NCBI GenBank assembly: GCA_033442325.1
Contig: JAWQFM010000002.1
Location: forward strand, 179,881-243,880
DNA from: Salpingoeca rosetta
Taxonomy: Eukaryota > Protista > Choanoflagellata
Direction: 5' to 3'
DNA: 64,000 nt
The notes beneath the pieces were generated by a model that had not been told where the DNA came from, did not search any database, and was given only the letters and a program-made list of their open reading frames with translations. Below, piece after piece: positions 57,859 through 62,103 of this stretch. The translations under genes and the position numbers were made by a program. Positions within the stretch are counted from its first letter, which is position 1. Each line of letters opens with the position of its first letter.

Positions 57859-60800
57859 ATGGAGCAACAGGCGTCGCCGACCACCTCCTACAACGACCAA
57901 TCCTCCCAGGACTCCTCCTCTCCTCCAACTCCTCCCCTTCAGCAACTGCACATCTCCGGGCCCAGCAGGTGCGTATGTGTGTGTGTGTGTGGGTGTGTGC
58001 GTGTGTGTGCGTGTGTGGGTGTGCGTGTGCGTGTGCGTGCATGTTTTGAGATGTGCTGTGTGCTGATGCTCTGACTTTGTTTGTTTCTGCCTTTTTTTTG
58101 CCGTTTGCATGTATGCTGCCTCTGACACGCTTCGTTGGCCTCACCCCCTTGCCTGACCCTCTCTTGTTGTGATGACGAACAACAGCGGCAACAGTGCTGG
58201 CCAGGCACAGCCGTCGTGCTTTGGCGACCAGGCCCTTCTACTTCGGCATCGAAACCCGGCCGTACGTGTCACAACTCCAACCTGTGCTTGCTTGTGTGTG
58301 TGTGTGTGTGTGTGTGTGTGTGTGTGTGTGTGTGTGTGTGTGTGTGTGTGTGTGTGTGTGTGTGTGTCTGCTAATTACGGTCCACATGAGTTGCCTCACA
58401 CACACACACCCTCACGGTTGCCTCCGTCGTGTTCGTTGTGTTTGGGCGCTGCAAATCGCCAGTGGCCCGTGGCGTCATGCCAGTTTGACCGGCTGCCAGC
58501 ACGCTTCCCAGGTCAGAGCGATGCCATGTGTTGACCTGTGTGCATGCTTGTCTGTCTTGCGTGTCACCCATTGCCTTGTGCCCTTGCCCCTCCTCCCTCC
58601 TCCCCTCGACATGGCCTCATTCGCGTCGGTGGGTCGTCTTCCTTCACAGCACCGCGCCGCTCCAGCACATCCAAGGCCGCCCCGACACCCCGGCCAACCA
58701 GAGGTCCCATCTCGTGTCGAGTCGTGTCGTCTGTTGTTGTCCGCTGTTGTTTGCTGCCGTCTACTCCTGTCCACTGTTGTTTGCTGTTGTTAGCTGTAGC
58801 GTGTTCAAGCGAGTCTGTAGCGTCCTGAGGACGATGTGTGATCATACATTTGCGCTGTACAGTGTGCTCATCAACCACCACCACCACCACCACCATTTGC
58901 GCATGCTGCGGTCTGTTGCTTCCATCCATCAGCGATTCGCAGTCATGGCGGCTCCCCAACGGCCTCTCGTCGCCGCCGCTCAAAGAACTCCCGCAAAGGT
59001 CAGTGACTCCCACAATCCCACACGCAATTGTCATCCCTACCCATTTCTCGATGTACTGTTGGCTTTGCCTCCTCCCAAAACTTGCTTGTCGACGATACAA
59101 ACCTGCCAGCTCACCACCACCGCCACGACTGCTACGACTGCCACCGCCACTGCTGCTGCCTCCACCGCCATTGCAGCGTCCCAGCCGTACCGCAGCGCAC
59201 CTGTATCGCCAACTGGCAGCGGGCGCCGCAGTCCCGTCCACCCGTCCGCACTCGTCGCTGCCCTCCGCGACTCGGACATCTCCAAGCGTACGCTCAACCA
59301 TCATCATCACCACCACCGGCAACACTGCTCACACTCCACCATCATCACCATCACCACTGACAACCCTGCTCACACACGACTGGCACGACGCTCTCTGTCC
59401 TTTGTCCAGCTGCGTGTTCAGCGTCAGTGGTTGTGTGTTGATGTTTGATTTTGCTTCGCTGTTGAGCTCACGTGGTTCCAATCCAACACATCACGCTGTT
59501 GCCACCGCTGCTTGTTGCCTGTGCAGATGTGAGGGAGGCGGTGCGAGACATCATGATCATCACGCCGATGCCGGATGTGACGCAGGCGCCCACAGCGCTT
59601 GCCGTCGCTGACAGCGAGTACCACTATGTTGGCGCCCCTGCCATCCCGGATATGGACCCACCCTTTCGCCTGCGCCTGGTACTGGACAATCTCGACTCGT
59701 CGCTGCGCAAGGACCGCTGCCAGCGGGTGCTGTCGCGCCCGGCGAGCGACGAGGAGTTGCTGTTGTGCCACACCCCCGGCCACGTCAACGTATACGGCAG
59801 CGCCACCAGCACCCCCGCCCGCGCAGCCGTGCTCGGATACACCATGGACCGCCTGGTGCCGAAGGACCAGCGCGCAGCCGCACACGCAGCGCGTCTGGCC
59901 TGTGGCGCAACCATCGACGCCGCCTTGGCCGTGGCCACGGGGCAGTGCCTCAACGCCATGGTTGCCTGCCGCCCAGCAGGGCACCTCGCCCACTCGTCGC
60001 AGGCGCGCGGGTATTGTGTCTTCAACAACGTCGCTGTTGCAGCAAAGGTCTGCCTCCAGCAGCCGTCCGTCTCCCGCGTCATGATCGTGGTGCGTACACA
60101 CACACACACACACACACACACACACACACACACACGTGTGCATGATTGTCTGGCGGTGGTTTGTGAGCAACACTACGCCTTAGCCTGTGTGGTCATCGCG
60201 TGTCAAGTTGTGCGTGTCCATTTCGCCGTGTGTCCAGAGCATGGGCACGTGCTAACCCCAACACAATCTTGCATGCTCGCCATCCTTTTGTGTGTGTGTG
60301 TGTGTGTGTGTGTGTGTGTGTGTGTGTGTGTGTGTGTGTGTGTGTGTGTGTGTGTGTGTGTGTGTGTGTGTGTGTGTGTGTGTCACGTGCTGCAGGACAT
60401 TGACCACCGCCACGGCGCGGGCACGGAGGAGATATTCCTGCACAACCCGAATGTGATGGTGGTGTCGCTGCACCGGTATGACGACGGCCACTTCTTCCCC
60501 CACACGGGCCGCGTCTCAGATGCAGGCGTCGGTGACGGCAGGGGAACAAACGTCAACGTGGCCTGGCACTCCACCCCAACAGGTGCTCGGAGGACTTTTG
60601 TGTGTGTGTGTGTGTGTGTGTGTGTGTGTGTGTGTGTGTGTGTGTGTGTGCGTGCATGAGTGCGTGCCTTTTGTATCTGTGTACGCGTGTGTACGACCAC
60701 CCGCTTGAGCTGAGTTTTTGCCACTGTTGTTCCCGCTGACGTGTTGCCCGGGGCGTGTTGCACCAACCAAACCAGGCATGGGCGATTCGGAATACCTTGC

Positions 60801-62103
60801 TGCCTTCCGCTCCATCGTGCTGCCGCTCTGCGTCGAGTTTTCTCCCGACATCATCCTCATCTCCGCGGGCTTTGACGGCTGCGCATATGCAAACCTGCCC
60901 CAGGAGTACGGCGGCTACCACCTCTCCCCAGCGGGTGAGTCATGTGACCTATGGGCGGCGTGATGTGACTTCTCGTAGTGGGGAGGTGGTTGCGGTCGCA
61001 CATCTTCGCTGATTACAATAGAGCTCACATGCATGTCGTTTTGTTCATGTGCCTGCACATGTTGCCGGCCGTTGTGGTTTGTTTTTTGTGCTGCTGGCAG
61101 TGTACGGGTACCTGATCCGCATGCTGATGGCATCTGTTGGCGGCAAGGTCGTCGTCTCCCTCGAGGGCGCGTAAGTTTTGCACGCACGCACACCCATACG
61201 CCGATGGTTTGGGGTGGATCTATGCTTCATTCCCCCCCCCCCCCTCTGGCCCTGCTTTCTCCACAATGTTCCTCACCGTGACCACCGCCGCCACTGCCAC
61301 CCTGGTTATTGCTATCATCAGCGCGGACTCGACGTCCTCCACTGCGTGCATGTCCGTGTGCATCCGTGCGCTCCTTGGCGACCCGCTCCCCATGCTCCCG
61401 GACCCGGCGGAGCTGCCAAACAAGGCCTGCCTCGACACCCTCAAGGAGGTGCGTGTCTGTGTCGTGGGTGTGCGTGCGTGTGGGTGGGTATGGGTGAGTG
61501 TCTAAAGCATGCATGCATGTGCGTATTTGTTTTCACCACCCCACTCCTTCCCATCTCACACAAGGCGACATGATGTGTGCGTGGCAGGTGGTGCAAGTGC
61601 ACAGCAAGTATTGGAAGTCGCTTGCCGAATCGCTGTCTCTGGCCAACGTCGCACCCAACGACTACTTCAAGTTCCAGCCCGTCAGCCTCACGGGCTCAAA
61701 GTTCTGCGCCCCGCCCACGGTGCGTGCACCTCAACATGTGCATTGCTTCGATGTGGCACGCAGTGCTGTTGGACACGCCGTGCCTTTTCATCCTCTGACA
61801 TTGCATCGCTGTTGTGCTCCCACCTCACACACACACGCACACACACACGCACGCGCACGCGCACGCGCACGCACACAGGTGCTGAATCCGCGACGAACGT
61901 CGCTGCCGATGACGATGGCGCCACCGACGATTGTTGAGACGGAGGCGGAGCTGATTGCCACCAATCCCGCGCTGGCGGCGCTTGACGAGGAGGACCGCAG
62001 TCTCATCTTCAGCCTCACCACCCTCAAGTACACCGCCCAGCACCAGCACGGCCTCGTCATGCCGGAGGACGACGATGAGGCCGCGTCCTCGCAGCAGCAA
62101 TAG
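57859..62103 (+). CDS. Class II (IIa-like) histone deacetylase-fold protein with degenerate active site
   Basis: Phase-consistent exons from the ATG at 57859. HDAC motifs [82 protein letters not shown] and VHSKYW. TAG at 62101-62103. Confidence 0.9.

Follow-up and report, generated by a model that had tools for sequence, protein, structure and literature searches.

Does a histone deacetylase (HDAC) domain that has lost most of its catalytic residues still serve a choanoflagellate cell, or does the gene that encodes it record an annotation error or a decay? The question is raised by a + strand gene at 57859-62103 of a 64,000-nucleotide stretch of Salpingoeca rosetta DNA (assembly GCA_033442325.1, contig JAWQFM010000002.1, positions 179,881 to 243,880), referred to here as the window, in whose coordinates all positions are given. 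The gene has 13 coding exons, and their translation is exactly that of XP_004987917.1 (EGD81047.1; UniProt F2USD8), a 642-amino-acid protein annotated as "HDAC9 protein". A first-pass annotation of the window had described 59527-61448 as a stand-alone, class IIa-like pseudo-deacetylase; this span covers most of the deacetylase domain (exons 7-11) and falls short of the full coding sequence. The reading we favor, with a probability of about 0.78, is that this is a real, transcribed and spliced gene for a stand-alone class II HDAC fold that would lack zinc-dependent deacylation, is under purifying selection, and most likely acts as a non-catalytic binding or scaffold module.

Active-site residues and the evidence for them

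HDAC chemistry depends on zinc held by an Asp-His-Asp ligand set, a His-His pair with Asp/Asn relays, and a Tyr that stabilizes the oxyanion (PMC7288346). Four catalytic elements are missing from the S. rosetta protein: the general-base His, one zinc ligand, the charge-relay residue and the transition-state Tyr. The second catalytic His is replaced by Leu309 (CTC, 59985-59987), the charge-relay Asn/Asp by Ala351 (60417-60419), and the zinc-ligand His by Arg348 (CGC, 60408-60410), so that the ligand set is incomplete, with Asp346 and Asp439 kept. The catalytic Tyr is replaced by Ala483 (61323-61325), next to Ala482, whose codon is split by an intron (61169-61170|61322). When the protein was aligned by phmmer with the PDB sequences of HDAC6 and HDAC4, RPAGHLA fell opposite RPPGHHA, DIDHRHGAG opposite DWDVHHG(N/Q)G, LEGAAD opposite LEGGYN, and PDMDPPFR opposite HPE.P.R. 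Codons and alignments thus agree with the first-pass annotation on the Leu, Arg and relay Ala substitutions, and the alignment also bears out its DMDPPFR in place of HPExxxR.

These substitutions are present in the mRNA. Over 58800-62300 we compared the window with 2,257 raw stranded RNA-seq reads, two transcript assemblies and one DNA-like assembly, and no base differences or indels were seen in any of them. All junctions within the HDAC domain were confirmed by RNA reads or transcript contigs, including the one that forms LEGAA across intron 61171-61321 (166 stranded junction reads and both transcript contigs), and no reads restored HH, DxH or GGY, which upholds the intact spliced frame that had been proposed. 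Nearly all reads had the same orientation, indicating strand-specific transcription, and the mRNA is abundant, with a depth of about 50-200x in a quarter of one RNA-seq run. The absence of base differences and the supported junctions indicate that the substitutions are therefore not artefacts of assembly, annotation or splicing.

The losses are set in an otherwise well-preserved fold. PF00850 (residues 201-498, E=2.3e-65) is the sole Pfam domain, and the protein is therefore free-standing, as the first-pass annotation had it; it has no active partner domain, and the HDAC domain is flanked by a disordered N-terminus of 150 amino acids and a C-terminal tail. An AlphaFold2 model built from a 62-sequence alignment has pLDDT mostly >90 over residues 151-552, predicts disorder for residues 1-150, and predicts a C-terminal helix at residues 590-623 (pLDDT about 86). 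The top 18 Foldseek matches of this model in the PDB were all HDAC4 or HDAC7 (TM 0.82-0.93), with HDAC6 domains next. Alignment with 58 canonical class II and bacterial homologs gave 52 near-invariant columns (at least 88% conserved), of which S. rosetta keeps 40 while 12 are changed. The changed columns, where placeable, are at the active site and include the catalytic His, the zinc-ligand His, the charge-relay residue, the Tyr and the HPE motif; at most of them the replacement is the same or similar across the orthologs described below, which with the S. rosetta protein we call the pseudo-HDAC clade. By column, and with the role of each in the HDAC fold in brackets, the clade has Y/F for H189 (L1 loop), D/N for H197 and D for E199 (HPE motif), A for P306 (RPPGHH motif), L/M for H309 (general base), Y for F318 (tunnel wall), variable residues for C319 (beside the tunnel wall), I/F for W345 (DWD motif), R for H348 (zinc ligand), A/S for N351 (charge relay), A for D444 (loop after GFD) and A for Y483 (transition-state Tyr); A for G482 (LEGGY motif) is found in S. 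rosetta only.

Orthologs, selection and placement among class II HDACs

Five lineages with this protein are known: S. rosetta, Microstomoeca roanoka and three uncultured marine lineages. The M. roanoka ortholog is a complete transcript encoding 624 amino acids, with the motifs RPAGHMA, DFDHRHGSG and LEGGAD. The uncultured lineages are represented by a Tara Oceans metagenome contig (L001-L003; RPAGHMV, DIAHRHGSG and MEEA), by Logan assembly SRR14727191 (Logan C; L004, L006; RPSGHLA and DFDHRHGSG), and by Logan assembly SRR24908322 (Logan D; L005; RPAGHMA). The second catalytic His is Leu or Met in all five lineages, the zinc-ligand His is Arg in all four for which that exon is available, and the Tyr is Ala in both complete proteins (LEGAA in S. 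rosetta, LEGGA in M. roanoka). S. rosetta, M. roanoka and Logan C still have Asp346 and Asp439, and adjoining Arg348 is a clade-specific His, His347. The Tara ortholog is more degenerate, with Ala for the first zinc-ligand Asp (D346; L001:2175-2216) and MEEA for LEGG (2881-2949), and it has kept its reading frame despite these extra losses, at 54-67% identity. Chance does not explain the S. rosetta motif: the 311 class II relatives collected contain 444 RPxGH motifs, of which 438 have HH, and all but one of the six that deviate come from this family.

Identity between the pseudo-HDAC lineages is 46-67%. Nei-Gojobori estimates over exons 7-9 gave dN 0.32 and dS 1.24 for S. rosetta versus Tara; for S. 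rosetta versus Logan C, dN was 0.23 and synonymous sites were at saturation (pS 0.93), which corresponds to an approximate dN/dS of about 0.26 or lower. A core that is kept around a pocket that has changed consistently is the signature expected of a selected pseudoenzyme and not of a decaying gene, and the earlier proposal that the gene is being kept agrees with its expression and splicing, with losses common to four other lineages, and with the low dN/dS. When residues 60-345 were searched exhaustively by phmmer against 1.84 billion representative proteins, no lineages but these stood above the HDAC6 background among the top 150 matches listed. Two degenerate DNA patterns (DxDHRHGxGTxEIF and RPxGH[LM].H...GY..FNN), both of which match the known ortholog loci, had no matches in JGI metagenome contigs. 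The family looks narrow, comprising S. rosetta, Microstomoeca and close marine relatives, although more divergent orthologs below the listed top 150 are possible.

Among single-domain PDB sequences, the best phmmer match was HDAC4 (263 bits, E=2.8e-77), followed by HDAC7 (249) and HDAC6 CD2 (about 225), with lower scores for Clr3 (208), HDA15 (204), Hda1 (200) and HDAC10 (189). Trees were built with FastTree from 161 domains and with IQ-TREE (LG+C20+F+G4 PMSF) from 59 domains, with no named HDAC10 sequence included. The four pseudo-HDAC rows formed one clade (100/100) in both, on a long stem branch of 0.77 substitutions per site. This clade was sister to a group composed of P0235, a protein from an environmental scaffold, and insect, echinoderm, shark and fish HDAC4-like proteins (IQ-TREE 99/93, FastTree 89). 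LEGGY is intact in the insect and echinoderm HDAC4 proteins and in P0235, and the choanoflagellate loss is therefore independent of the Tyr-to-His change of vertebrates and goes further, in accordance with what had been proposed from the S. rosetta sequence.

P0235 is of interest in its own right. It is an intron-less HDAC of 527 amino acids (L007:6001-7584, on ENA scaffold GROS21-1_SAMEA9560695_METAG-scaffold_548) that has the structural-zinc motif of class IIa as well as LEGGY, and it branches at the base of the animal HDAC4-like proteins. The scaffold is metagenomic, 49.6 kb long and intron-poor, and encodes a ribonucleotide reductase large subunit as a neighbor of P0235; its source may be a protist or a giant virus.

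The first-pass label "class IIa-like" requires some qualification. It was supported by the closeness to HDAC4 and HDAC7 in sequence and structure and by the sister-group position, but the class IIa structural-zinc motif H.C.CG...HPEH, with its ~19-residue L.CGG insertion (CCHC), is absent from the S. rosetta and M. roanoka proteins in an alignment where P0235 and the insect, echinoderm and fish HDAC4-like proteins all have it. The protein could instead be unrelated to class IIa and represent a divergent Hda1- or HDAC6-like class II lineage drawn towards HDAC4 by a long-branch effect, which would account for the missing CCHC motif and for the lack of an HDAC4 Gln-rich/MEF2 region in Pfam searches. 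An approximately unbiased (AU) test also did not reject a tree with the clade outside both class IIa and the remaining eukaryotic class II rows (delta lnL 3.96, p=0.396). Against this stand the agreement of the two trees, the higher score for HDAC4 than for HDAC6 CD2, the class IIa identity of the top 18 structural matches, and a lengthened loop after GFD common to pseudo-HDAC and class IIa, and we consider an origin elsewhere in class II unlikely, while giving it real weight. We describe the S. rosetta protein as class IIa-related, probably as the sister lineage, and not as a class IIa member.

Other explanations concern the gene itself. An artefact of assembly, annotation or splice prediction, such that the true mRNA restores the canonical motifs, might be suspected from the large (GT)n/(CA)n introns, which could mislead gene callers, and from one intron that is an open, in-frame read-through, but it is already refuted by the reads and contigs described above, and the same substitutions are found in an independent transcript from M. 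roanoka, so that its probability is negligible. We also think it very improbable that this is a recently inactivated paralog, transcribed but functionless and drifting to a pseudogene. The long stem branch and the narrow distribution (five lineages among the matches listed, and none in the two metagenome pattern scans) are compatible with drift, but lineages that have diverged to synonymous saturation still have open frames and a conserved splice structure, expression is robust, the core positions and low dN/dS indicate constraint, and conservation extends to motifs on the N- and C-terminal sides of the domain. A third proposal is that the protein is still an enzyme, with a re-wired site (H308, H347, D344/D346 and D439, with another metal or none) and a different substrate. 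The pocket substitutions are indeed conserved and not random, a clade-specific His lies beside the lost ligand, and both ligand Asp residues persist in three lineages, yet wherever the relevant sequence is available, a lineage has lost the general base/acid His, the charge-relay residue and the Tyr, and the Tara substitutions leave no common metal site across the clade. Arabidopsis thaliana HDA7 (AtHDA7), which is without the same Asp/His ligands, has no zinc and no activity (PMC10920125), and we regard a re-wired enzyme as improbable.

Several points weigh against the preferred reading of a selected, non-catalytic module. S. rosetta still has its first catalytic His (H308) and two of the three zinc ligands (D346, D439), which together with the new, conserved H347 make residual or altered chemistry formally possible. 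Full-length orthologs number two, and the third (LEGGY) motif is visible in three lineages; dS is near saturation, which makes omega approximate; and the first three junctions (exons 1 to 4) lie outside the read coverage and are based on annotation and conservation. The missing catalytic elements, the loss of an Asp in the Tara lineage and the inactivity of AtHDA7 nevertheless lead us to infer that the protein is non-catalytic.

Gene structure and flanking motifs

All introns of the gene are GT..AG. Exon 1 (57859..57968, with ATG 57859) encodes residues 1-37, which include a conserved motif, and like exon 2 (58186..58261) is defined by splice context and the exact translation. Exon 3 (58463..58511) is conserved in M. 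roanoka and in the Tara contig, to which it was matched by tblastx (L001). Exon 4 (58650..58703), with the sequence APRRSS, is also conserved in L001, and 99 RNA reads join 58703 to 58933. Exon 5 (58933..58998) encodes IRSHGGSP and a basic cluster conserved in L001, L005 and M. roanoka, and exon 6 (59177..59287) a motif conserved in five lineages; the junctions on either side of exon 6 have 91 (58998|59177) and 69 (59287|59527) reads. The first half of the HDAC domain, with DMDPPFR (59649-59669) and RPAGHLA, is encoded by exon 7 (59527..60089), which matches PF00850 on its own (E=1.8e-24) and is further supported by the PDB alignment. Transcript contigs join 60089 to 60396, the start of exon 8 (60396..60582), which encodes H347 (60405-60407), R348 and A351. 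Exon 9 (60776..60934; 110 reads at 60582|60776) encodes SAGFD, with the retained D439, and then the clade-specific loop GCAYANLP, and is the most conserved exon (dN 0.10-0.14). Exon 10 (61101..61170; 72 reads at 60934|61101) ends in LEG plus GC, and exon 11 (61322..61448), joined to it at 61170|61322, completes A482 and holds A483. Exon 12 (61588..61719) has 129 reads at 61448|61588, and transcript contigs join 61719 to 61879, where exon 13 (61879..62103) begins; this last exon encodes an acidic, helical motif (61981-62031) and ends with the stop TAG at 62101-62103.

Some features of the locus are likely to confuse gene prediction. Intron 60090-60395 consists mostly of (CA)n/(GT)n runs and is open and in frame with its flanking exons, and reading through it yields a false open reading frame of 395 amino acids (59472-60659) that reads CVCVCV; long (GT)n or (CA)n tracts also occur in further introns of the gene, at 58290-58370, 60600-60650 and 61840-61878. 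Within exon 5, an ATG at 58945-58947 has a good-looking context and invites a wrong start call. A model that started there and used an acceptor at 59109 was rejected, as the RNA-seq contains junction 58998|59177 and an upstream exon, and this ATG is out of frame with the coding sequence. One transcript contig extends about 600 nt 5' of exon 5, which is ~310 nt beyond coding exons 1-4 (57547-57858) and implies a long 5' untranslated region, possibly spliced.

Conserved motifs extend beyond the deacetylase domain, and include several in the N-terminus, a basic cluster among them, and LDEEDxxxxxxLxxLK in the C-terminus. The block at 58935-59211 (residues 98-130) is highly conserved within the otherwise disordered N-terminus, where it comprises IRSHGGSP, the basic cluster and a further motif, and it recurs in M. 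roanoka, in the Tara contig and in both Logan lineages. Its appearance is that of Ser/Thr-Pro phosphosites placed around a basic cluster resembling a nuclear localization signal; the conserved Ser/Thr-Pro sites are not canonical RxxSxP / 14-3-3 motifs. A Pfam search for PF12203 (HDAC4 Gln-rich/MEF2-binding) or another N-terminal domain found no match. The C-terminal motif (residues 603-619) lies within the predicted helix and reads LDEEDCEVVANLLALKH in M. roanoka. By eye it has some likeness to the acidic-hydrophobic nuclear export signal (NES) at the C-terminus of class IIa HDACs; BLASTP comparison of the C-terminal tail with the C-terminus of an HDAC4-like fish protein, which contains the class IIa NES region, found no similarity.

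A remodeled pocket and its relation to known inactive HDAC folds

In the reading we favor, the arginase/deacetylase core has stayed intact while the former active-site pocket was remodeled to new, conserved residues: Tyr/Phe189, Asp199, Ala306, Leu/Met309, Tyr318, His347-Arg348, Ala/Ser351, the GCA[YF]AN loop and Ala483. The consistency of these residues suggests that the former active site may still be in use, as a binding site. Arg348 could plausibly act as a stand-in for the metal, filling the empty site and forming salt bridges with D346 and D439. The disordered N-terminus, with its Ser/Thr-Pro sites around a basic cluster, would probably be regulated by phosphorylation, and such regulation might affect localization, as it does in class IIa HDACs.

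Dead HDAC-fold proteins are already known, namely the HDAC10 pseudo-domain (PsiDAC), the vertebrate class IIa HDACs and the stand-alone AtHDA7. Animal class IIa proteins (HDAC4/5/7/9) are the most similar to the choanoflagellate protein, being its best sequence and structural match and its sister group, and having a similar architecture, with a single HDAC domain between a long, disordered, Ser-rich N-terminus and a C-terminal tail. The vertebrate members are near-inactive and serve as scaffolds, with SMRT bound at the rim of the entrance to the catalytic site (PMC4498904, PMC7288346). Their only change is that of the Tyr to His, and zinc and the two catalytic His residues are still in place, whereas the choanoflagellate protein has lost four elements and is also without the CCHC insertion, the Pfam HDAC4_Gln/MEF2 match and the C-terminal similarity. 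The missing structural-zinc subdomain argues against SMRT-type binding identical to that of vertebrate class IIa HDACs.

PsiDAC is likewise an HDAC fold in which zinc ligands and catalytic residues are unconserved (PMC5454378), but it shares a polypeptide with an active polyamine-deacetylase domain, shows poor conservation (fish and human sequences are 28% identical) and is missing active-site loops, unlike the free-standing choanoflagellate protein with its higher identity between lineages and largely preserved core. AtHDA7 is stand-alone, has mutated XDXH zinc ligands and a normal arginase fold, binds no zinc, and is inactive and lineage-restricted (PMC10920125). It is a parallel in being a free-standing HDAC fold with altered ligands; it differs in being a class I protein found in Brassicaceae only, with Asp/His changed to Gly/Pro, whereas the choanoflagellate protein belongs to class II, has Arg for the ligand His, and has also lost the catalytic His and Tyr. 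Carbonic-anhydrase-related protein VIII is a zinc-enzyme fold in which a ligand His has become Arg and which is conserved as a non-catalytic binding protein; this is an analogy only, as its fold and biology are unrelated to those of HDACs. Literature searches by accession, by choanoflagellate or S. rosetta with HDAC, and on class IIa evolution found no paper on this protein or on a dead choanoflagellate HDAC. The particulars of interest are that a protein of this kind is placed beside class IIa in the closest relatives of animals, that the metal site has undergone a His-to-Arg change, and that the remodeled pocket is conserved.

A more far-reaching idea, which we regard as speculative and rather unlikely, is that the choanoflagellate clade is a surviving unicellular branch of class IIa, and that a non-catalytic, signal-regulated binding use, controlled through N-terminal phosphorylation, goes back to the ancestor shared by choanoflagellates and animals. 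If that were true, the scaffold or reader role would predate animals and would not be a vertebrate novelty, and Arg348 would mark the conversion of the metal site into a metal-free ligand pocket.

For the family, the annotation "HDAC9 protein / histone deacetylase" is misleading where active choanoflagellate HDACs are counted. Class IIa HDACs are central signal-responsive corepressors of animals, and whether they act as enzymes, readers or scaffolds is debated. A class IIa-related domain in which catalysis has apparently been abolished while the fold, pocket and flanking motifs are selected would be a natural separation-of-function allele, in that its function, whatever its nature, most likely requires no deacetylation. 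The genetic tractability of S. rosetta makes the partners, localization and life-history phenotypes of this protein directly accessible.

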